A stretch of DNA of 64,000 nt from Chara braunii. Taxonomy: Eukaryota; Plantae; Charophyceae. Positions 36,320 to 50,579 of the stretch are shown piece by piece. The DNA lies in NCBI GenBank assembly GCA_003427395.1, contig BFEA01000026.1, forward strand, positions 2,180,011 through 2,244,010, written 5' to 3'. Made by a program: the position numbers and the translations under genes. The stretch's first letter is position 1, and the number at the start of each line of letters is the position of its first letter. The notes below the pieces were generated by a model. It made no database searches. It was not told where the DNA came from and saw only the letters and a program-made list of their open reading frames with translations.

Positions 36320-39300
36320 GGGGGAGAGGACGCAGGTAGGACACATGTCGAATGATCGGATGAGCCGACCGGCTTCCCGACACCTCTGGCGCAAGCCGTA
36401 TCATGTTCACCCCACTAGGACCGAGCTCGACCACGCGGAATCGCTCGAAGAATCGTGGTGCTAACTTGCCTTGGCGAGCACATTTTCTCACCTGTACGAT
36501 GTCCTTTAATTTATATTGGGGCCGAGGCCCAGCGTTCCCATTCCGGGCCTCGTAGCTCCAGACCTGTCTCCCATGGGCTATTTCTGTCATTCGTTGTCTT
36601 TTTCGGGCCAATCGGGTGCAGGCTATTTGTCCGTAGTTGTTGGAAGGGGGTCAGACCCGTGGACTCGTGGGGGGTCCCCCGGTGGATAGCCAAAATATGG
36701 TCCACGATATCGGGTCAGGGGCTCGTGTCATTCGCCGCGATATTGCGTCGCATAGCGGTCTTAATCACTTGATTCGCGTTCTCTACCAGTCCGTTGGATT
36801 GCGACATGTGGGGAGCAGTGCTGCGGATGGAGACACCATGTAGGACTAGGCTCCTCAAAACTTCCCCTCTAAATTCTGCCCAATTGTCTGTCAGGATCTC
36901 CTCGGTGTCCTGGTGCATCCCGAGAAAACGGTTGACGTATCGCGCGATTTTGGCCGCCTGTTGCGTCTTACGTGGATATGCCTCGATCCATTTCGAAAAG
37001 GGGGCACGAAACCAAAAGGATTGAATACTCGCAGCTATTCGGTCAAGGGGGCACGAAAATCATATCGGTGGTATCTATGCTGACTCTTTGAAATGGTCGT
37101 TCAACCACGGTAGGGACTATCAATCTAGGCGGCTGGATCGGCGCCTTGTCAGCGGCGCAGACGAAGCAGTTTCGGACGATGAATTTAACGTCGTCCCGAA
37201 TATTGGACCAATACCATTCATTTTTATCAATCTCCGCCTCCATGATCCGGACGGCAAAATGAGCCGCAGTCTCCCCGTGGGCTGACTTAACCCAATCATA
37301 CCTTATGAACGGATGAGGGACAAACATCCAAATCCCGCTTCCGTCCGTTTTCCATTTTTCTAATTGTCCCTCATTCCATCGGTAATCCCAAGCCCTCTCA
37401 TTGGCCCGTCTTCGGTCTTCTTCGTGAAGTCTTGGAGGGAGTTCCCAACCACCGTAACTATCAGGACGACATCTGTCCAGACCTCAACTCCTTTAAACCG
37501 TCGGGTTTTTTCTAGCCCTTCAGATGTGGCTTCGAGAAATCGAGCTTCCGTCGGGATTTTATCGGTGCGACACAGGGGACAAAACCAGGGCTTGTCCGTA
37601 TTTCGGTACTGGATACGAGAACCATGGGCTCGGGAAACACATCGTTGACAATCTATCCACTCGACATAACCTTCCCCACTCGGCCGCATAGGGACCAAGT
37701 AGACTTTCAAAATTGCTTCACAAAAATAGCAAAATTTGTCAGGAAGGGAGGAGAAGGAGGACGACGAGAGAGGGGAAAGGGGACCTTCGAGATTACCTTT
37801 GCGCCCCATCGCCATCGTGCCGATCACCCCTTAGGAGCTCGAGGAAGGATGGCCACTTGTCCGTATCGTGGCCCGCTGACTAGTTTCAATTCTTTTCCAC
37901 GGAGTGATCTCTTCGCCTTTAGCCACTTTTGTCGGGCGGTGAAGTCGTGTCAGTCCGTCCGCGTTCCCGTGCCTCTCCGTTTTTCGATGGACGACGTCGA
38001 AATCGTATTCTTGCAGCCGTACCGCCCAGCGCCCAATCATGCCTGTGTAATTAGTGAGCCTCTTGAGAGCCAACAGGGGCTCGTGGTCCGTGACGAGGAG
38101 AAACTTTTGTCTGTACAAATACAGATGGAAGTGCTAAATTCCCCAAACCACTGCGTAGCATTCTCCTTGTGGAGCCGAATCTTTCTTCCTCTCGTCCGAC
38201 ACGGTACGAGACGCGTACTCGATGACGTGTTCGAGGCCGTCGTTCCCCTTCTGCGCTAGGATGGCAGAGATTGCCTTAGGCTGCCAATCTGTGATGAGTA
38301 GGAATTGCTTGGCTGGGTCCGGTCGAATCAAAATAGTTGCCGTAGCTAAGAGCGTTGAAGGCCCGTTCACACTCCGCGTCCCAGCTGAGGGGCTGGTCCT
38401 TCCGCAGTAAGTTCGTCAGGGGCCGTGCGATAATGGCAAAGCCCTTGATAAATCGACGATAGTACGAAGTCAGTCCCAGGAAGGGTCGAACTTGCGTTAA
38501 CGACGTGGGATTCGGGGCGTCCCGAACGGCCGCGACTTTTCTCGAATCGGGCCTCAAGCCTCCCCGAGTTACCATGTAGCCTAGGAATGAGATCTCAGAA
38601 AGTAAGAACTCACTTTTTTCCCGCCCAATCTTGAATCCAGTGTCCCGTAGGGCTCCCAGTGTCCACTGGATATGTTGCGCGTGCCCGTGGAACGATTCTG
38701 AGTAGACCAAGATATCGTCCATATACACAATGACGCAGAAATTGATCATCCCTTGAGTCAATCGGGTCTTGTTGACGAAATTTTGGAATGTTACATTCAT
38801 CGCTTTCTGAAACGTAGCCGACGCATTGCAGATCCCCATCGGGCATCGAACCCACTGCCAGGTGCCTTGAAACAGGACAAAAGTCGTCGTGGGCCGATCC
38901 TCCTCTTTAACTAGGATGTGATGGAACCCATGACGAATACCAAACTTACTAAAGTAATTAGCACACCCAATCGCATCAAGCAAATTGTCAATCCGGGGAA
39001 GGGGATACACATCCTTGATCGTGATATCATTCCATTTGCGATAATCGATGCAAATGCGAATCGACCCGTTTTTTTTCGGTACCAGAACTACGGGGAATGA
39101 CCACGGTCCCGTGGCTGGTTCAATCCATCCGTTAGTTTCGAATTCCCTAATCCTTTGTAAGGCTGTCTTTCGTTCCACGAGGGAATACCTGTACGGTTTG
39201 CAGTGGATCGGAGGATGATTTCCGGTCCGAATCTCATGCTGAAAGACAAATGATAGCCTGATTTGTGTCCGTCACACTGATCGCTCCTTGATATTGCCTT
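36320..39300 (-). pseudogene. pol of gypsy 2: RT, RNase H, PHD finger and integrase (disrupted)
   Basis: RT PWSFPVVLVPKKNGSIRICIDYR, YPLPRID, YMDDILVYS. RNase H ITDWQP, VTDHEPL, NADGLTR. Integrase AH..AHF...CFVC, VSIDT, LTDN, PHMSQSNGLVENAN, GKLAPRF. Confidence 0.93.
37570..37731 (-). other. PHD finger-like domain within pol
   Basis: CYFC-x20-WIDCQRC-x4-H-x2-R-x9-WFCPLC matches C4HC3 with one ligand changed (codon CGT, one transition from TGT). Confidence 0.8.
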
Positions 39301-39339
39301 AGAATTTCTGCGATTAGACGGTGAATCTCGTCAGCCAGT

Positions 39340-39718
39340 GTGTCCGAACCTCGATTCAACGGGGGTTTCCTGTTGAAAGGTTCAACGACCGTTGAACCCC
39401 CGTTACAACGCCGCGCTACACCGCGTCAGAACGGGGTATAACGCGGCCCGCAAACATTTTTTTCGCTGGCAAAAAATAAAAAAACAAAAAAATAAAAAAA
39501 TGGGGGTGTATATTTTTTTGCGCTCTACATCCTCATATTTTTATTTTTATTTTTTGAGCATTTAAATTATTTAAAATAAAAATAAAAAACCTAACCAGAC
39601 TCAAAGCACATCGATTTTTTTTTTTTTTTTGATTGATTGATTGGTTGATTGGTGGGGGATGGGTCCCCCCCCCCATCCCCACCCAATCACACACAACTCG
39701 CACACGCACACACACACA

Positions 39719-39761
<43 letters not shown>

Positions 39762-41870
39762 TTACTTGCGTGGTGCAAGGAACCTTACTGTTCTTCACTT
39801 GCTGGAGTGCATCGAATCACATGCATATACACTGGCTTCACAGATTGCGAAGTCTCACACAAAAACCCCAATAGAAGATGAATGAGAACCAGGAGGACCA
39901 TCTCAATTAACAAGGAACCAGGAGGACCATCTCAATTAACAAGATCAGAATTAGAGAGGAAACATCGTGAGTTCAAAGTATATAGCGCTGAACAGCGTTA
40001 CAAGTCTTCTTCTATTATCATTAGTTTCAAGCCTGGCGAATGTCAACAACAACGCTCAACAGGTAAGTGTCACCATAGCTCACACTTCCCCCTCTCTCAT
40101 CTGCTTTCTTCTCTCTCTCCCTCTATGTCTATAGTCCTGGTCTACCCTCACTCATCATGCATCCACACTCCCTATCACACGAGGATCTACTATGAATACT
40201 ACTCACTGGTATCTTGTATTGACTAGCCCTACTAACATACTAGCTAGTGCTGGCGCAGCTATGGCTGCCTTCCCTCTAGCCAACACTCTCTTCCTCCTTC
40301 CCGCATAGCGCTACTCTTCAGCCTAATGCAGCTCACACACATCTAGCGCACAAGTGCCACGACACTTCCACACTCTCATGCGAAGTGAGCATCTGTCCGC
40401 ATGGAAGGCTGCCCAGTCCTTTATAGTGCTGGACTAGTCTGGCGAGGCCTGCATTCAGCCTCAAGTGGGCCTGGGACTCCTGCCCAGTACCGATTGTTGC
40501 AAAGTGTGTGTCCCATTATCTTTTCCCATGGTCTGCTGCTATTTTGGGCCATCGGGCCTGTCTCTTGGAGTCCCGGTATGAATCAGGACTGACTCGTGGA
40601 ATTATGACTGGACTGGGATTGTAGCCTTTGACTTATTGACGAACAGACATGACTTTTCATCGAGGAGACATGACCCTAACTCAGTTTTGAAAATTGTGTC
40701 CAATACCTGTTCATTCAGGTCCTGTTTGTGACCTTTCAAAATGACTTTTCACTTCAATGTGGATGCCACATTTACCTAAGGAGCTTTGTCTTTTGAGTTG
40801 TTGTTCGTGAATTAAAGTTCTGGCCCACAGGGCCCCTTGCTGTTGGGGCATCCATTTGGGGTCTAATTCGTAAAGACCCTTTTAGCGGGGGTTTAAAACT
40901 GTTTTTTTTGTTGTTTTGTTTTTNNNNNNNNNNNNNNNNNNNNNNNNNNNNNNNNNNNNNNNNNNNNNNNNNNNNNNNNNNNNNNNNNNNNNNNNNNNNN
41001 NNNNNNNNNNNNNNNNNNNNNNNNNNNNNNNNNNNNNNNNNNNNNNNNNNNNNNNNNNNNNNNNNNNNNNNNNNNNNNNNNNNNNNNNNNNNNNNNNNNN
41101 NNNNNNNNNNNNNNNNNNNNNNNNNNNNNNNNNNNNNNNNNNNNNNNNNNNNNNNNNNNNNNNNNNNNNNNNNNNNNNNNNNNNNNNNNNNNNNNNNNNN
41201 NNNNNNNNNNNNNNNNNNNNNNNNNNNNNNNNNGTCGGCCATAGGCCCACTGGATAGAAGATTTTCAGTACTTTGCTTGCTGTTGTGCAATTATCTCATT
41301 GGGCGGAGCCCTCCTTCAATCACAGAGTGTATGGAGGGCGCCAGGATCACTGCTGAGAGAAGTTGATTTTATTCTAGAAAATGTGGCAGTTACTTTGTTC
41401 ATTGTTGTTGCAACCACCAGCATCAGATCATTTGGCTGGGGAAACAGTCAGCCGTAATTTCAGGTGGGAGTTTTTTTTTTTTTTTTTTTTTTTTTGCTAT
41501 CCTCCTGTTTTCTCAGGCCAAAAATTCGTAATGAATCGATAAGCCCGCTGCCACCCAGTGTTACATTGGATCGGCCATATTCCTATCCGACTGCTAATGG
41601 GACCATGTTCCTGGACTTTGTGGTTAGAGGTTAAAAAAAAAATAAAAAAAATAAAAAATCAACGGGATTTAACGGGATTTAACGGGATGATTTTTTTTTT
41701 TGCTCCACGCGTGTCCAACGATGTGTCCGAGGCCCAATGCGCCCTCCTCGTTGAACAGTATTCAACGGGGAGGGCCCGTTGTACTATTCAACAGGGAGTC
41801 AACGGGGCCCCGAGGGCTATTCAACGGGTACAACGACGTTGAAACTTTTCCGTTGCACGTTGAATAGACA
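39340..41870. mobile_element. Non-coding DNA-transposon-like insertion splitting gypsy 2 pol
   Basis: Both ends carry clustered TTCAACG/CGTTGAA repeats, with inverted termini CGATTCAACG / CGTTGAATAG. It contains the GACCC-CCCACCAATCAA motif (reverse strand, ~39630-39675) shared with the hAT-like elements. No clean TSD was found. Confidence 0.6.
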
Positions 41871-41879
41871 CATTGTCGT

Positions 41880-44460
41880 CGGGCACGTAATGTGGTACAT
41901 GCAACCCATAGAGTTGGCCTAGTATTTGAATGGTAATCTGTTTCGTGTTTCGTCAGTGTTTTCGAGACGGGGCGCGGAGATGAATGAATTGTCCGACCGT
42001 CAAGAAAACACCGTGGCCATCATTTGGGCCTCGTCCTCTCGGATTGCCACGTGTTCCTCCGGGGTTACGCCGTCGTCGACATCCTGGCATCGTACGTGTT
42101 TTTTCGCGATCCTGATCCCGAGATTGTGGTATCCTATGTCGAGACGCGTAGGGGGTTCCAAAGCCTCGGCCTCAACCTCTAGTCTCAACAGTCTTATTTC
42201 TTTCCCAGGAGGCAACAGGAAATGGGGTAGCTCTGTAATATCACAGAAAGCTCTCTTATCCCTATATCTCGCAAGCACTGGAGTGGTGCCGTCGTATAAG
42301 GTCCGAGAGGGTTCCAAAGAATCGACCATGCGGGAAATCTGCACAAGTGGTTCGCCCAAAATTAATGCGCGTGTTCTCTGGATGTGTCCTCCCGTGAGAT
42401 TGAACGTTTTCGTAGTTGCTTGTCGAATCGGATAGCGGATACGTTGCTGCACTAACTCCCGAATCGCTAAATCGTCTTCATCGCTAGCATCAGTGTCACT
42501 CGAGAGGTTTGGCTCCTCTATCCGGCGATCACCGCGTTCCGCAAATTCCTTCCAAGTGATCATTCGGAGAGTTCCTTCGGGCATCGGGGAAGTCTTATGG
42601 GTTATCTCCGCCACCGTTCTTAGAGTCAATCTCATAGGGATGGCGGATGGTTTCCCTCCCGTATTCCGGAGGACAATCGATCGTCTTTCAAAATCTCGGT
42701 TGGCCCGCAGCGCCGTGAGAGTGGGCAGCCCCAACAGAACGTCGTACGTACTTACATCTAATACCACGACATCCCCCAGTGCATGTAACTTTCCCAATCG
42801 AAAAGCAATGTTGGTCATTCATCCCACTGTCTTGATTTTCTCTTCATCCGTGGAGACGAGATGATCCTTTTCTGTTAGCATGATCATATATTTTCTTCTT
42901 CCCGCTCTTTCTACTTCCTTAGCGAGGTAGCCAAGACGCGACTCCTGAGTCGATAATGGCATTGTATGGGATTCCCCAGACCTCGATGTCATATTCGGCG
43001 GATTTCCACGGGATCGCTTTGATCCACAGAAAGTGATAATCTTTCTGTATTAGTCCCAATCGTATAGGGTCCGACGTACTGGCGAGGTTCGGGTTGTCCT
43101 CTTGGACATGGGCTTTTCCTTTCGTGTTCGCCGTTCTCGCAATGGGGAATCATTTTCTGTTCGCCTTGCAGTGTTGCAACATGCGCTCGTTAGCTTGTTC
43201 CGAGATGGATAACAGGTGTCCGATTGGGAGGGGAATGCGATGGTCCAGGGCGTGGACGACATTTAGGACGTCTATTTCCCCAGTGACAAAGGTGGGTCCT
43301 CCAGACTTCATCTCCCCTGGGGAGGGTCTCCATTCCGCCCCCTGTCGCTCCTCATTTGCGGGTCTGATAGTCTCGATCATTCCTAACCCCGGATATCCTA
43401 ATGCCACGTACTAGTCCAGAGGAATAAGTTATGTTGCTCCCTCAGTAGTAGCTAGCATACTCCCGCCTCCTTCCATTTCTTCCAACATCGCTCCTACTCT
43501 TCCTGGCCCATTAGCGATGGGTGCCGTGGCCACCGGTGCACCCTCCACTCGGGCTTGCGCAGGTCGATGGGCACAGTCTTGGGCTATGTGTCCTGTTGGT
43601 GACACGTATAGGAAACACTCGGGTTGCCTGCTGCTCCTCCTGTCGCCGGGATTGGAGCCAATCCGAGCTGTATCGGCGTGGCTCTTACGGCAATGGGACG
43701 CATCGATCTCATTAACGACTCTATCCTAGCGTTATGCTCGCGCTGCTCCTTTTTGCTTTCCTGTATCAAAGTAACTAACGTTTTAGTTAGTTCCAGTATC
43801 ACAGCAGATTCGTTCTATCATGTATGGCTTTCGGACGGGACTGGGGGAGCAGCCATCACAGGAATCGGTGGCCCTGTGATTGCGCCGAGAGCCGACCGTT
43901 TAGGTACAATTTGCTCCAAATAGGTGACAGGACCCGACACAAATCCCATGTTTTCGAATTTGTTTTGTAGCGCGGCAAGTTCCGCCTTAGCTCTGGTTAA
44001 TTCAGATAAATCTCCCTCCCTAGGATAGTCTTCTCCTTCCAGAAAGCTCGCGATGAATTTTTGTTCCATCTCTTCTGCGCCTGCCATGATTTGTTGCAGC
44101 ATGTGGTTAATGGGGGAGAACTGTTTTCGCAGTTTCACCCTCATTGTCTTATTGCGGAGCCCGTCAATAAACAAATCTCTCCCTACCTGCTCTCCCTGCT
44201 CAGTTTTGACAAACATTCAGTAAAACCAATTGCGATACCCAGTGACGGATTCAAGTGGTTTTTGCTTGGTCATAAAAAAAGCTTGTTCGGGATGAATATA
44301 ATCGAAAAGAGTTAAGGAGTCATGTTCGAACGTTGGAAGATTAGTCCAAACATAGGTGTTGAACCAATAATGCGCATCCCCTCTCAATCTGGCGTGGATA
44401 TTGATCCGCGCTTCGTCATTGTCGTATTGCTGCGCGTGGGGCGTGGCTAGCCATGCCCCA
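41880..44460 (-). pseudogene. gag and protease region of gypsy 2 (disrupted)
   Basis: Gag-like RLRGDAHYWF and LFIDGLRN, a zinc-knuckle remnant YTCHQQ.H.AQDC near 43570-43610, protease AIIDSG near 42945-42960, and YDVLLGLP. Confidence 0.8.
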
Positions 44461-44717: not shown

Positions 44718-44729
44718 GCTCTGATACCA
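44718..44729 (-). promoter_or_regulatory. Primer binding site (tRNA-iMet) of gypsy 2
   Basis: GCTCTGATACCA is the reverse complement of TGGTATCAGAGC and abuts LTR B. Confidence 0.92.
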
Positions 44730-46596
44730 ACCTCACGCCTAGCACGACTTTCTGTTCGGAGTAGGATGGGGGCCCGAAAATGCGAAAAGGGGTGTGCCAA
44801 GGATTTTAGGAAAGTGGGGGTGGAGTTCCAGGTCGGAACTGAGATTTCCTGTGACAAGTTTCGGGGGTAAAAGCACAAGAGGGTATGTTCAGGTCGTACT
44901 TGGCGCTTTAATTTTTATAAGAAGGAAGGTAGGCCTCCTCTCGTGGTTTGGGCACAGAAGGAAAACCGCGGATGTCATGTAGCATAAGACAAATGGCATG
45001 TGCGGTGCATCCCGGACTAAAGATCCTGGGGTACTCTTCCACAATCACAGCACCGACAGATCTAAACATTCTTGCATTCTCGAACAAAATCCTAACAACA
45101 TTGCCCTTGCCAACGAACTCAATTTTCGTCAACTTCCAAACCCAAAAAAGGAAATCACCATCTCCTCTGGTTTCGCCTTCGCAGTTGGTCACGTGGTTCG
45201 ACCGGTTGTCTGTGCCGCTCGGCTTCGGTTCGGGCTTGCCGAGCGATTTTCGAGGATCGATATGCCTGGTTCCGCCGACACTTCTTGCAAGGTTTGCGGG
45301 GCCAATAGCGGGCTATGGAATTCCATGACACCACCATGAGCTTGTGATATGGAAGGAGGAGGTGAAAGGGAGGGAAACATGTCTTAATAACGACGAAGCC
45401 GGGGGATATAAATATTGTGTGTTATAAGTATCCAGGTAATCGGGGCCTTTGGGATCGTTAGTTATGGCACAGTGAAAGTCCCTTGCGCACAATCGGTCGT
45501 TCTCTGTCGGACAGGGGAATTCTAGATTTATGAAGTTCCCCCGCCGTCTGAGTAGTTCATTTTTCCAGTATTCGCGATATTCCGGGTCCCTCAGGCTCTC
45601 ACGATCGGACATCCAAAAGGGAAACCCCGCAGCCATATCCGTTTAGTAAGCTCGGTCCCCTGCATCCTTATACAGGGTTAAGGCTGACTCGCATACAGGA
45701 GCGCGTACGTGGTGACTCGACTTTCTCGAGATTGCGGTCGTACGCGAGCTCACACGTGAGAAACAACGGATTCGTTCAGCGTACCGATCGCGTTCGACAT
45801 ACATGCAAATTTCCTACTCATGCTATGTTGGGTGAGATCCGGTCATTACATGCCATACATGTGACGAACAGGAGGAAAAAGGGGAAAGGACAATCAACTT
45901 CTTGGTGATCGAAAGTTAACGATTAAACTCAAACATCCATAAATTCCATAATTAAACCACCACTACCCCCGCCGTTGGAAAATAGGGCCTACCGGTAGCA
46001 GGTGAAGAAAGAAAAATCGTCGGCCTACCGGTAGCACAACCAACTACCGGGGAAACTTGAGAGGGCGAACTCCCGGGTACTGAGACTCGTTGTTTGTTTT
46101 GCAGACCACAACCCTACTCCTGGCGGCCGCCGCTGGGGGGTCACATGAGTTGTCTGCATCGCGCCAGAGTCGGGGGCGCTGGGGGTCGTATGAAATGCAA
46201 TGGCGTTTCAAACTTTTTTTTTTGTTTTTCTTATTCGTTCTGAAAAGCGGAGTTCGCCTAGGAAGCCGGGCGAGATCCCACTGGCAATGAGGACTCAAAT
46301 GAGTGTAAGAATCTGGATGTGTTTGAGGCGAGGTGCAGAAAACTGTGATTGATCTGCTTTTCTGCATCTCTGCGTGGAACACGTCCAGATTCTGACACTT
46401 GTTCCAATTGTCCTTCCCAGTGGGATCTGGGCCGGACTGGGCCTCGCCACAACACTCTCGACATGTGAGAGAGGCAAAAAAAAGAGCGGGTGCATGTGGA
46501 CATGGTCTTGGGAGAGGTTCTTTCTCCCGTTTTTTTTGCATACGATGAGTGGTGTGGCGTTGCCTGACGTGGCGNGTGCATCTGGANCTTTTACNG

Positions 46597-46677
<81 letters not shown>

Positions 46678-46818
46678 AGCANGTAANNGGNTGTTCGAAG
46701 GTGTGATGCACCCTTCTCNTATCGTTGTCAGAACGGGTGAATGACATGGCGTGTACATCGACGTCCGCAGGGATAGGCGGAGGGTGCCGGGGTTCACCGT
46801 GCGAGTTAGGTGCTGCAC

Positions 46819-46854
<36 letters not shown>

Positions 46855-48068
46855 GTATCTATCTACCTGTCTNNNNNNNNNNNNNNNNNNNNNNNNNNNN
46901 NNNNNNNNNNNNNNNNNNNNNNNNNNNNNNNNNNNNNNNNNNNNNNNNNNNNNNNNNNNNNNNNNNNNNNNNNNNNNNNNNNNNNNNNNNNNNNNNNNNN
47001 NNNNNNNNNNNNNNNNNNNNNNNNNNNNNNNNNNNNNNNNNNNNNNNNNNNNNNNNNNNNNNNNNNNNNNNNNNNNNNNNNNNNNNNNNNNNNNNNNNNN
47101 NNNNNNNNNNNNNNNNNNNNNNNNNNNNNNNNNNNNNNNNNNNNNNNNNNNNNNNNNNNNNNNNNNNNNNNNNNNNNNNNNNNNNNNNNNNNNNNNNNNN
47201 NNNNNNNNNNNNNNNNNNNNNNNNNNNNNNNNNNNNNNNNNNNNNNNNNNNNNNNNNNNNNNNNNNNNNNNNNNNNNNNNNNNNNNNNNNNNNNNNNNNN
47301 NNNNNNNNNNNNNNNNNNNNNNNNNNNNNNNNNNNNNNNNNNNNNNNNNNNNNNNNNNNNNNNNNNNNNNNNNNNNNNNNNNNNNNNNNNNNNNNNNNNN
47401 NNNNNNNNNNNNNNNNNNNNNNNNNNNNNNNNNNNNNNNNNNNNNNNNNNNNNNNNNNNNNNNNNNNNNNNNNNNNNNNNNNNNNNNNNNNNNNNNNNNN
47501 NNNNNNNNNNNNNNNNNNNNNNNNNNNNNNNNNNNNNNNNNNNNNNNNNNNNNNNNNNNNNNNNNNNNNNNNNNNNNNNNNNNNNNNNNNNNNNNNNNNN
47601 NNNNNNNNNNNNNNNNNNNNNNNNNNNNNNNNNNNNNNNNNNNNNNNNNNNNNNNNNNNNNNNNNNNNNNNNNNNNNNNNNNNNNNNNNNNNNNNNNNNN
47701 NNNNNNNNNNNNNNNNNNNNNNNNNNNNNNNNNNNNNNNNNNNNNNNNNNNNNNNNNNNNNNNNNNNNNNNNNNNNNNNNNNNNNNNNNNNNNNNNNNNN
47801 NNNNNNNNNNNNNNNNNNNNNNNNNNNNNNNNNNNAAAACTAAACTGAACAAAGTTTGCGTCAGGGTCACATCTAAATTCTTCACCAGATTTAAATTAAA
47901 AAATATAATTCTTATTTTTATTTTTTTCGCCTGCCCGGGGAAGTGACCCCGGGCCACTCTGGTATATTTCCATGTTCTTCCTGTAGATTCATTCGATTTT
48001 GCTCATCATATCGATGGAAGCACCATGAGACCAGCCGTGAGGTTGAGGACTCTCTCTCTCTCTCTCTT

Positions 48069-48121
<53 letters not shown>

Positions 48122-48287
48122 AAAAATACAAAAACTACAAAATACAAGTGTGGCAGTGTATATATCCATGTTCCAGCGGTAGATTCTTTCCATTTTGGTA
48201 ATCCTATCGGATGAACTACCATGAGGCCAACCGCGAGGCTGAACACTGACCTACTCTCTCTCTCTCTCACACACTCACACATACACA

Positions 48288-48321
<34 letters not shown>

Positions 48322-48511
48322 TAGGCACACACACACACAGAAGCACACACACTTACCTGCAAAGCGAAATTCGATGCCGTCAAAATGAGGGGCAAAGACA
48401 GGCGAGTATGCTGTTTTTCTCACGACGCGCCAAAGAGAGAACTTTGCAGACGTACTGCCTCCCGGCGTCAGATGTGCGTAGCCTCCCTGCCTCACATGTG
48501 TGCGGCGTGCA

Positions 48512-48590
<79 letters not shown>

Positions 48591-48635
48591 CGAAGCGGAC
48601 GTGTGTGCGCGGCAGAGAGACAGAGAGCTAGAGAC

Positions 48636-48697
<62 letters not shown>

Positions 48698-49478
48698 CGC
48701 TGAGTAGGGTGGCAACCCCAAGCAACACCTTTCGCCGCCGAAGGGCATTGCCACAACACTCGAAATGTGCAAAATGGGACTTAACTTCCCGCTAGAACAT
48801 GGCCAGATGCACCCGCCGTACTGGGCCTCATATTTCGAGAGTGTTGTGGCGAGGACCGGAATCCGGAGAACTGCACGCACTTCATGGTGCACGGTGAGAA
48901 ACACCGACAGTGGCCACCGCGATTTCACTGCTGACGGTTTCTCAGGTAAGACCTTTTTATTTTTTCATCTTCTTTTTTTTTTTCGAAATGGATCACTTGC
49001 TTCCCATGCGCGGGAGCCGACTTCTGTACCCGCCGACTTCTGTACATCGTCTCGTTCCCCCGCGGCGGCGGCCGACCCCACCTGTGATTTCTGTGATGGA
49101 CTCACCCATATACTAGCTAGGCCGCTAGCCCGGTACCCCGCCCGCCGAATGCCAGTCCCACCTTCTGGAAAAGGGAAAAAAGGCGCCTGTTGCCTGCCGG
49201 TCGCCGACCTTCGCGAAAAATTCTCCTCAAGGCCAGGAAAAGTGAATTTCTGTCGGCGGGGGTAGTGGTGGTTTAAACTCAAACATCCATAACGAGCGCT
49301 CTCAATCAGATCTGAGCGCAAGTAAATAGTAGCCAGAGATGAAGCAGGCATCTCAAAACAAGATTGGGAATCCGAAAAAATCACTAATTGAAAGGGAATT
49401 CACATTCATTTCATGCATATCAGGATCCAAAATTATACAGATGAACAAAGGAAAAAACCTCATCCCACGCCCACAACT

Positions 49479-49567
<89 letters not shown>

Positions 49568-50579
49568 ACTCCCGATACCGGCAGTCCGTCGCTGAGTATC
49601 AACGCAGAGTTGTCACCCTGCTTGGTTCGAGCATGCAAGCCAGGTTCGCTCGTGCGCTACAGTCCGTCGCGGCCCCGCACGTCAACCCCTCATACCCGAC
49701 ACCAGCTCGTCAGATCGCTCAACTCTCGCACTCACTTACCTTCCAAACTTGCTCGTTAGCTGACCCTCACTGATCACGCTAACCTCGAAATTCTTAGAGC
49801 GTAAACTAATTGCGCTTGCAAAATTTATAGCATGCATGCCTGTGCGAAAGGTACGGGATTAAGCCTAGGTGGACAACAGGAGAAGAGAGGAAGTGCCTAC
49901 GTCTGCATGGGCAGGCCGCGACGTGGGGGTCGTAGCCGCACTCCACGCACCGATCCAGTTATCCAGGCACTCAGACCAATTAGAATGGAGCATCAAACAT
50001 GCAAGACGAAGAAGAAGAAGGTGGACAAATATGAGGAAATCAAGAAAGAAGAAAGATACAGTTACAATCGCGCCTGCCAAAAGCGACAGTTGCACATGAT
50101 TAAGGGCACGATCCAGTCAGAGCCCAGTTCCCAACGCAGCAAGATGCGCACAAGCGTGGCGCAACAAAATTCAAAGTACCTAAATTCCTAGTCTAAGTCC
50201 TAATTGCAAAAGAAAATTTCGAATAGGCAAAAGAAAAACGATTCCGCTAGCCCGTAAGGGCCCGACATTAGTTGAAAATTCAAAAACGATATTCGCGCGC
50301 GATGATCGCGCCAAAATTCCCAGTGTTCACAGCAAAACAAGAAAAAAGTTATGGTACAACTATTTCTTGCGCTTGCGAAGGCGCGACTACCCAACCGTTG
50401 GCACGGGATTTTCCCGACACCGATCCGACAACTTTCAGCAGAAAACAAAAAGAAACGAGGGCATCCATGCAACTAGCCCGCCCGACCCATCTTCCCACAA
50501 CTCATCCATTCGACCCGTCGTATTTCCCCAAACAGCTTCGCGCATAAAGTCGCGCGATTACAGAAAATAGTTCGTCACA
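44730..50579 (-). repeat. LTR B of gypsy 2 (interrupted by 45956-49272; PBS-proximal terminus missing)
   Basis: Homologous to LTR A along its length and ends CGTCACA at 50579. Confidence 0.9.
45956..49272. mobile_element. 3.3-kb non-autonomous TTAA-flanked TIR element nested in LTR B
   Basis: Perfect 19-bp TIRs (ACCACCACTACCCCCGCCG) with TTAA on both sides. LTR A shows the empty site at ~33684. Confidence 0.9.

Follow-up and report, generated by a model that had tools for sequence, protein, structure and literature searches.

The question raised by this locus is whether a cysteine-rich stretch between the RNase H and the integrase of a Ty3/gypsy element is a PHD finger, and what such a finger would do on an integrase. 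The window, i.e., the whole stretch of DNA analysed, comprises 64,000 nt of Chara braunii contig BFEA01000026.1, and all element coordinates refer to its minus strand. As expected for Ty3/gypsy, two LTRs flank RVP_2, RVT_1, RT_RNaseH(_2), and Integrase_H2C2/rve in minus-strand order, and the following parts were assigned.

44727–50579, minus strand: 5' LTR (blastn to the 3' LTR in the blocks 44727–45942, 49273–49416, and 49416–50579)
44718–44729, minus strand: primer-binding-site-like 12-mer TGGTATCAGAGC, adjoining the 5' LTR, read from the sequence
42003–42818, minus strand: protease region (Pfam RVP_2, E 0.0026, below cut-off; homologous region in relatives)
38279–39271, minus strand: reverse transcriptase (Pfam RVT_1, E 2.7e-29)
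37834–38415, minus strand: RNase H in two pieces with a stop at 38134–38136 between them (RT_RNaseH_2, E 8.4e-15; RT_RNaseH, E 3.2e-05)
37046–37483, minus strand: N-terminal part of the integrase with the HHCC region at about 37142–37303 (Pfam Integrase_H2C2, E 2.9e-08)
36514–37059, minus strand: integrase catalytic core in two pieces with a stop between them (weak rve_3 match)
36207–36650, minus strand: C-terminal SH3/GPY-F-like region of the integrase, without chromodomain (SH3_Tf2-1 only, E 0.032)
32481–35071, minus strand: 3' LTR of about 2.6 kb (blastn against the other LTR, 89–92% identity)

The 3' LTR terminus reads ...GTCACA on the plus strand, and no target-site duplication was recognisable at either LTR end of the element. 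About 3.3 kb inside the 5' LTR (45943–49272) contain an N run and microsatellites. By analogy with plant LTR elements, the 12-mer would correspond to initiator tRNA-Met. The description of the LTRs as transposase-bearing was supported in part, with one LTR ORF (32643–33014, minus strand) showing a match to DUF659 (E 3e-07) that is below the Pfam cut-off. With LTRs about 90% alike, several stops and frameshifts, interrupting insertions, and one ligand of the finger lost, this copy of the element is dead. RNA reads from three oligo-dT runs, placed at a likeness of at least 85% on positions 35100–39300, reached a depth of about 1–10 along Pol in one run (X6), where nearly all were less than 95% alike and thus derive from relatives, not from the window copy; no joints were seen among these sparse reads. 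The genome of Chara braunii is very large and repeat-rich, and the finger-bearing lineage belongs to its abundant gypsy groups. A second gypsy element in the window (about 2000–9000, plus strand) has its integrase directly after RNase H without any finger, so that the finger is lineage-specific.

The region from the end of RNase H into the integrase revealed the following organization.

37824–37949, minus strand: tail of the RNase H frame, ending in ...YGQVAILPRAPKG followed by TGA 37826–37824 (aligned with five relatives)
37807–37833, minus strand: ORF junction with TAA 37833–37831 in the finger frame and ATGs at 37815–37813 and 37809–37807
37570–37731, minus strand: core of the PHD-like C4HC3 finger, with seven of eight ligands, the sixth being Arg
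37417–37569, minus strand: conserved linker and N-terminal extension of the integrase (66–76% identical to relatives)

The finger is encoded by a 155-aa ORF (37360–37827; stop-free piece 37830–37363, minus strand) and sits after RNase H and ahead of the HHCC region of the integrase. It reads C33-x2-C36-x23-C60-x2-C63-x4-H68-x2-R71-x11-C83-x2-C86, with one Trp three residues N-terminal of C60 (W57) and another two residues N-terminal of C83 (W81). Thus, the preliminary description was right in placing it between RNase H and HHCC, in the frame of the RNase H piece 38133–37834 and separated from it by a single TAA (37833–37831), and also in counting seven of the eight ligands together with both Trp residues, the missing Cys being replaced by a CGT codon (R71, 37615–37617). 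The HHCC region lies in another frame than the finger, with a frameshift at about 37405–37417, while in three relatives (L001, L002, and L007) linker and N-terminal extension run unbroken into the integrase, forming finger-into-integrase ORFs of 619, 503, and 240 aa, respectively. The integrase catalytic core is 56–82% identical to that of the relatives, whose intact ORFs match rve. The reported lack of a chromodomain was also confirmed, since Chromo gave no Pfam match at E ≤ 1, either in the window's C-terminal integrase piece or in the complete 619-aa ORF of L001; on these two sequences, the lineage lacks the C-terminal integrase chromodomain by which chromoviruses are recognised.

Searches with tblastn identified the finger between RNase H and integrase in eight further copies (L001–L008) on eight Chara braunii contigs, so that it is not a one-off of this element; including the window, nine copies from four subfamilies carry it at the same place. 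All eight C4HC3 ligands are kept in four of the nine (L001, L006, L007, and L008), with L006 bearing a frameshift inside the finger. The common pattern is C-x2-C-x22/23-C-x2-C-x4/5-H-x2-C-x10/11-C-x2-C, and every ligand column is Cys or His in most of the nine copies. In the column of the sixth ligand, seven of nine copies have Cys (TGT or TGC), L002 has Phe, and the window has Arg, which, judging from this alignment, is a copy-specific change. Where the corresponding part is still present, namely in seven copies, each has the motif W-x-C-x2-C. When 614,166 six-frame codons (the window and eight related loci) were scanned with a strict C4HC3 regular expression, it hit four times, at homologous finger sites only, and never in 20 shuffles; the pattern is thus not a product of chance.

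Codons for the Cys and His ligands vary synonymously among the copies (TGT/TGC, CAT/CAC), and the eight ligands and two Trp residues were retained while synonymous sites became saturated. For the finger core, dN/dS was about 0.06–0.19 at a dS of 0.8 to saturated, and reverse transcriptase, RNase H, and integrase revealed values of 0.03–0.2 in diverged pairs. The finger core therefore evolved under purifying selection, like reverse transcriptase and integrase. It is a real, lineage-conserved C4HC3 module between RNase H and HHCC in a gypsy lineage without chromodomain.

That the finger is part of a continuous RH-PHD-IN frame, as had been proposed, is doubtful because in the relatives an ORF boundary separates it from RNase H. 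Each of the four subfamilies has a conserved ATG as the opening of its finger-integrase frame, with the stop of the RNase H frame no more than about 10 nt away from it, and the junction takes the forms TGA-N7-ATG, ATGGGTGA, ATGA, and TGA-N8-ATG. Relative to RNase H, the finger-integrase frame is +1 in L001/L003/L004 and in L006/L008, and -1 in L002/L005 and in window/L007. The two ATGs of the window (37815–37813 and 37809–37807) align with this conserved start, and the tail of RNase H, which in five relatives remains part of the RNase H frame, has been moved to another frame in the window by a 1-nt insertion near 37900. This arrangement suggests that the integrase with its finger is an ORF of its own and is not cut from one continuous Pol; the ancestral finger-integrase may have been made by reinitiation, frameshifting, or splicing. 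Since all nine copies are defective somewhere and none is intact, this reading rests on the agreement at the level of subfamilies.

Alternatively, the junction could reflect decay only, the ancestral Pol having been a single RT-RH-finger-IN frame. A continuous Pol is the rule for Ty3/gypsy, the nine copies are damaged elsewhere as well, and in the window RNase H and finger do share a frame with a single stop between them. This common frame, however, results from the copy-specific 1-nt insertion, the offset is common to the members within each subfamily, the RNase H stop falls very close to the conserved ATG, and the flanks on both sides are under purifying selection. We therefore regard decay of a continuous frame as somewhat unlikely.

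Regarding the identity of the finger, its assignment to the PHD fold is probable, based on motif and profile comparisons. The ligands follow the C4HC3 order with PHD-like spacing, and a Trp stands two residues before the seventh ligand; compared to usual PHD fingers, the first loop (22–23 residues) is slightly longer and the last (10–11) slightly shorter. The Pfam scan suggested in the preliminary description gave a mixed outcome. For the window copy, PHD (PF00628) gave no hit at E ≤ 1, but it was the model matched by most of the nine copies (five, best E 0.0022), followed by PHD_4 (four) and PHD_2 (two). None of these models reached its Pfam cut-off (18.4 bits against 24 for PF00628, 18.1 against 30.6 for PHD_4, and 15.4 against 28 for PHD_2). 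In sequence searches against solved structures, the top four, five, and six hits were all PHD fingers with aligned ligands (E 0.046–0.6), among them those of SHPRH, PHF7, PHF13, ING1-like, ZMYND11, and Jade-1. The neighbours found with a language model were likewise PHD clusters, the best being Alfin-like (0.92, 177 shared features). AlphaFold2 runs on alignments of six and nine sequences reached pLDDT values of 46.2 and 53.5, so that the models were too poor for a call on the interleaved cross-brace fold with two zinc ions; a Foldseek search of PDB with the better of these low-pLDDT models gave nothing at E ≤ 0.001, and its hits, at E > 1 only, were ribosomal or TFIIS zinc ribbons.

A PHD-like sequence does not by itself make a histone reader, and the finger could be a selected zinc module that binds nucleic acid or a host protein, or that aids integrase assembly beside HHCC. 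Conservation and selection are silent on its ligand, models for C1, FYVE_2, and zinc ribbons also matched weakly, and a canonical aromatic cage is not evident in the sequence. In many readers of H3K4me3, the cage Trp follows the fourth Cys, and at this position of the finger there is no aromatic residue. ZMYND11 and some others of the top-hit PHD fingers are not known as stand-alone histone binders. On the other hand, three independent types of search consistently placed PHD-family matches at the top, and the published precedents of PHD fingers and chromodomains in retrotransposons point to chromatin. Altogether, a role unrelated to histones seems rather unlikely to us.

Very improbable is an assignment to the CDCA7-type zf-4CXXC_R1, which recognises the DNA-methylation state and would replace PHD as the identity of the finger. 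It did give the best single Pfam E-value (3.8e-04, 21 bits, in L007), matched four of nine copies, and matched the window copy at E 0.0029. Yet its score stays below the cut-off of 22.7, and only positions 9–64 of the 99 in the model are matched, so that the C-terminal third is missing. Both families have His as the fifth ligand, the hallmark of C4HC3, and no zf-4CXXC_R1 protein appeared in the searches against solved structures. That the window copy has a Cys-rich stretch by chance, or captured a host exon as a single event, has a negligible probability; nothing beyond the weak Pfam scores speaks for it, and it is refuted by the homologous site being filled in the eight other copies of four subfamilies, by ligands held through synonymous changes at dN/dS far below 1, and by the absence of shuffle hits.

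Taken as a whole, we lean towards the view that the window carries a decayed PHD-type C4HC3 finger, which is an N-terminal integrase module of an abundant Chara gypsy group without chromodomain, encoded with the integrase in its own ORF and serving in histone tethering. In such an element, the finger would tether the complex of integrase and cDNA to nucleosomes through a histone tail. By analogy with the C-terminal chromodomain of chromoviruses, this would bias the insertion sites, and a bias of this kind would parallel what the PHD of the Chlamydomonas element Gypsy-7a_cRei has been suggested to do. A more specific version, in which a Chara-specific amplified gypsy lineage replaced its chromodomain by a diverged PHD-type reader of a non-canonical mark, with finger and integrase expressed from their own stop/start ORF, appears unlikely as a complete package; if it were true, neither the dosage of integrase nor chromatin targeting would remain coupled to RT-RNase H. 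Should the finger indeed recognise a histone mark, the lineage would provide, among streptophytes, an equivalent of chromodomain targeting and of the PHD-gypsy of Chlamydomonas, and a handle on why these gypsy elements accumulated. If the finger-integrase does have a separate ORF, this mode of integrase expression would be unusual for Ty3/gypsy.

In protein databases, the finger is hardly visible. HMMER phmmer with the window piece against 1.84 billion representative proteins resulted in four matches, all of them to Chara braunii gene models and with the matched parts beginning at residues 63–83, and in no relative outside Chara. A word-indexed search with the finger region only returned three proteins, again all from Chara. 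Chara gene models made up 119 of the 120 best listed Pol matches, and outside Chara the closest Pol in the protein database was only 30% identical. The finger is absent from 135 retrieved proteins, and in the annotated gene models of this set splicing skips the first half of the finger, so that it is hidden from protein databases. Surveys of chromatin readers in transposable elements will thus have missed it if they were based on proteomes and Pfam thresholds.

The preliminary description regarded the locus as a candidate for an undescribed system, which was not borne out. A PHD on a gypsy integrase for targeting is not a new idea, and the design has been published for a green-algal gypsy: the domain list given for the active Chlamydomonas reinhardtii element Gypsy-7a_cRei reads GAG, PROT, RT, RH, PHD, INT, its PHD has been proposed to help avoid harmful insertions, and its intergenic insertions are given as 2.6 times more frequent than expected (PMC9940879). 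Fusions of PHD with retrotransposons and transposons have also been surveyed already (bioRxiv 10.1101/2021.11.30.470311). Compared by published domain order only, the Chara finger occupies the same place between RNase H and integrase. Differences were found in the host, a chlorophyte in the case of Gypsy-7a_cRei and a streptophyte alga in the case of Chara, in detection, as the PHD of Gypsy-7a_cRei was named as such in its publication while the Chara finger does not reach the Pfam thresholds, and in the frame, as PHD and INT are drawn within one polyprotein for Gypsy-7a_cRei while the Chara relatives have an ORF boundary before the finger. Chromoviruses such as MAGGY carry a chromodomain at the integrase C-terminus (Gao et al. 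2008, via 10.1101/2021.11.30.470311). The Chara lineage may resemble them in having a chromatin-reader module on the integrase, with presumed tethering to a histone mark, but its reader is a PHD-like zinc finger at the opposite end of the integrase, and no chromodomain is present. PHD fingers are also known from CR1 non-LTR elements, Rehavkus, REM1, and Chlamys PLEs, and Pygo-like ones from cnidarian retrotransposons (PMC8557442, PMC6673714, 10.1101/2021.11.30.470311). With these, the Chara element shares an accessory PHD of the kind recruited repeatedly by mobile elements, although they belong to other element classes with the PHD elsewhere in the element. The PHDs of other transposable elements were found as Pfam-positive in gene models, a way of detection that would miss the Chara finger. 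The metagenome-derived protein P0018 (749 aa) combines PHD, Integrase_H2C2, and rve; its PHD is Pfam-positive (25.3 bits) and lies about 150 residues N-terminal of HHCC, and its gypsy-type integrase is 29% identical to that of Chara. Homology between the two fingers was not detectable, with hhalign giving a probability of 29% over 26 columns only for the Chara finger profile against the P0018 PHD. In the Ogre/Tat group of plant Ty3/gypsy elements, Pol has a gap between protease and RT, and splicing connects the two parts. The Chara gypsy Pol likewise appears to lie in two separate frames, with the break between RNase H and integrase instead of between protease and RT. It is this stop/start junction with its split frame that is new compared to the published designs.

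The finger belongs to a long Ty3/gypsy LTR retrotransposon, which is degraded and encoded on the minus strand of the window. Its two LTRs are about 2.6 kb each (identity 89–92%), and its Pol is interrupted by several stops and frameshifts. The 12-mer adjoining its 5' LTR is presumably a primer-binding site for initiator tRNA-Met, as is usual in plant LTR elements. In element order, we assigned the following features:

44727-45942 and 49273-50579, minus: 5' LTR, split by ~3.3 kb including an N run
44718-44729, minus: 12-mer TGGTATCAGAGC, adjoining the 5' LTR
42818-42003, minus: protease
between protease and RT, minus: disrupted stretch of ~2.7 kb with microsatellites and an N gap
39271-38279, minus: RT (RVT_1, E 2.7e-29)
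38415-37834, minus: RNase H
37830-37363, minus: finger-bearing piece, between RNase H and integrase HHCC
within 37483-37046, minus: integrase HHCC zinc-binding domain (Integrase_H2C2, E 2.9e-08)
37059-36514, minus: integrase core
36650-36207, minus: SH3/GPY-F-like integrase C-terminus
32481-35071, minus: 3' LTR

The element is disrupted between protease and RT (39300-42000) and within the 5' LTR (45943-49272), either by insertions or by gaps in the assembly; both places contain N runs (40924-41233, 46873-47835) as well as (CA)n/(CT)n microsatellites. An ORF in the 3' LTR (32643-33014, minus), with a homologous stretch at ~44890-45260 in the 5' LTR, matched DUF659 (hAT-transposase associated; E 3e-07), but at 30.7 bits stayed below the cut-off of 34.7, so that the transposase-bearing LTRs proposed in the preliminary description hold in part; the ORF appears to be a captured transposase fragment. 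A second, unrelated gypsy element (~2000-9000, plus; RT 39% identical) has its integrase directly after RNase H, with no zinc finger between them.

In the ORF at 37360-37827 (minus), the finger reads C33-x2-C36-x23-C60-x2-C63-x4-H68-x2-R71-x11-C83-x2-C86, plus W57 and W81. A strict C4HC3 pattern, run across the window plus related loci (614,166 six-frame codons), matched homologous finger sites only and had no match in 20 shuffles. The finger piece shares its frame with the RNase H piece, a single TAA (37833-37831) standing between the two, and is cut off from the HHCC region by a frameshift near 37405-37417. Since ligands, Trp residues, the CGT codon of R71 (37615-37617) and the TAA were re-read as stated, the preliminary description was accurate in reporting a PHD-like C4HC3 motif with seven of eight ligands, two Trp and CGT for the missing Cys, placed after one in-frame stop between RNase H and HHCC.

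A phmmer search of the finger piece against 1.84 billion representative proteins resulted in four matches only, all to Chara braunii gene models (GCA_003427395.1) and all beginning inside or downstream of the finger. We then ran tblastn on the genomic DNA from which these and additional Chara models derive. It revealed a complete finger in eight more copies, each on its own contig (L001-L008), and in every case the finger sits after RNase H and ahead of the N-terminal extension of the integrase. Sequence comparison divides the nine copies into four subfamilies (window/L007, L006/L008, L002/L005 and L001/L003/L004); in the finger, the last shares only ~38% identity with the window. All eight ligands are retained in L001, L006, L007 and L008, in L006 despite a frameshift within the finger; these sister copies thus keep finger and ligands. 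Ligand replacements differ among the other copies, namely Tyr (L004, L005), Ser (L003), Phe (L002) and Arg (window), the last being a private change because seven of the nine copies have Cys (TGT or TGC) as their sixth ligand. As also described before, Pfam detected no chromodomain; this holds for the integrase C-terminus of the window as well as for the finger-integrase ORF of L001, which is complete (619 aa). Downstream of the integrase, on the same strand, both families carry a conserved coding-like region (L001:13168-13707, L006:7928-8269, L008:7556-7897, L007:7681-7976, L005:10176-10523), followed in family A by an acidic Glu-rich tail; it matched no Pfam family, and we found no counterpart in the window copy.

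Ligand codons show synonymous differences between copies (TGT/TGC, CAT/CAC). Nei-Gojobori estimates for the finger core gave dN 0.086 and dS 0.82 for L007 against the window (dN/dS 0.10), 0.13 and 2.3 for L007 against L008 (0.06), and 0.06–0.07 and 0.14–0.43 for family B pairs (0.16–0.49), dS being saturated in most remaining pairs. For RT, RNase H and integrase, dN/dS was 0.03–0.2 in diverged pairs and up to ~0.4 against the closest copy, L007. In sequence, the finger is less conserved than the catalytic domains and on par with the integrase C-terminus. Synonymous ligand codons and low dN/dS therefore indicate that the finger was functional in these elements during the divergence of the subfamilies.

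Regarding its type, the finger has the C4HC3 ligand order with W-x-C-x2-C ahead of the last pair. In a Pfam scan of the nine copies, PHD matched most members (five of nine, best E 0.0022), followed by PHD_4 (four) and PHD_2 (two), but no PHD model reached its curated cut-off. The lowest single E-value belonged to zf-4CXXC_R1, matched over positions 9–64 of 99 and below its own cut-off. When two profiles and the L007 finger were searched against sequences of solved structures, all top matches were PHD fingers (E 0.046–0.6: SHPRH, PHF7, PHF13, ING1-like, ZMYND11, Jade-1 and an Arabidopsis PHD), with ligands aligning one to one, and its language-model neighbours were PHD clusters (best Alfin-like, 0.92, 177 shared features). 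Two AlphaFold2 models were of low confidence (pLDDT 46 and 53), and a fold search with the better one found no match. Thus, a PHD-type fold is quite probable, although we refrain from listing the finger as an established member of Pfam PHD.

We aligned the DNA linking RNase H to the finger in the window copy and the relatives. In relatives, the frame of RNase H runs on through a conserved tail (family A, ...EEITPWKEP..YGQVAVLPR...; family B, ...ERLIPWK..PRYGGLHVLRK...), and the stop that ends it lies no more than about 10 nt from a conserved ATG, the start of the finger-integrase frame:

window 37807-37949, minus: TGA-N8-ATG
L001:11120-11440, and L003: TGA-N7-ATG
L002:10220-10320: ATGG
L005:7560-7860: ATGA
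L008:4975-5275: ATGGGTGA; L006 alike, plus an earlier TAA

Relative to RNase H, the finger frame is shifted by +1 in L001/L003/L004 and L006/L008 and by -1 in L002/L005 and window/L007. As this offset is common within and different between subfamilies, and purifying selection acted on both flanks, the elements apparently did not require a fixed link between the two reading frames. The 'same frame, one stop' layout of the window is due to a private 1-nt insertion near 37900, which puts the RNase H tail (37949-37827) into another frame. Of the continuous RNase H-PHD-integrase ORF under purifying selection envisaged earlier, selection was borne out (finger dN/dS 0.06–0.49) but continuity is doubtful, the frame breaking before the finger in relatives. 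The simplest reading would be a separate finger-integrase ORF expressed via reinitiation, frameshifting or splicing, which we hold to be moderately likely because no intact element occurs among the copies seen.

This RNase H-finger junction also accounts for the fact that all Chara gene models skip the finger's first half, their predicted introns jumping from RNase H to mid-finger, so that the finger is absent from protein databases: none of 135 fetched proteins, almost all Chara gene models of the lineage, contained the whole motif. For the Pol of a lineage member, 119 of the 120 best matches were Chara gene models, and the nearest non-Chara Pol among them was 30% identical. Of three RNA runs, one (X6) gave poly(A) reads at low depth across the whole Pol (35100-39300) on both strands, five of them at ≥95% likeness to the window copy; as likeness was mostly 85–95%, they come from relatives. 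Thus, relatives are transcribed at a low level, and the window copy is almost silent.

Altogether, the earlier interpretation is partly supported: to judge from the nine copies, the integrase of this gypsy lineage without chromodomain begins with a PHD-like zinc finger that is under selection and shared across the lineage, a putative chromatin reader. Two points are new: the finger occurs in a streptophyte alga, in a form that annotation misses, and integrase and finger are likely to have an ORF of their own; our literature search found no paper describing this Chara lineage. The suggestion of an undescribed system did not stand, and the green lineage was already known to have the RNase H-PHD-integrase architecture, since PMC9940879 lists GAG, PROT, RT, RH, PHD and INT for the active Chlamydomonas element Gypsy-7a_cRei (Chlamydomonas Genome Project v6). 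That paper calls PHD fingers a common accessory domain of Chlamydomonas transposons and suggests that the one of Gypsy-7a_cRei may help minimise harmful insertions. CR1, Rehavkus, REM1 and Chlamys elements with PHD fingers are cited in PMC8557442 and PMC6673714. In a survey of 172 eukaryotes, PHD and Chromo were the readers found most frequently in fusions with transposon domains, with Chromo-bearing but no PHD-bearing gypsy expansions reported for Chara braunii (10.1101/2021.11.30.470311). Finally, a metagenome-derived protein (P0018, 749 aa, 2893-bp contig, GCA_041447075.1 / JGI) harbors a Pfam-positive PHD (25.3 bits) ~150 residues before HHCC, thus N-terminal of a gypsy-type integrase as in the Chara lineage; this unrelated integrase is another, independent instance of a PHD-integrase layout.
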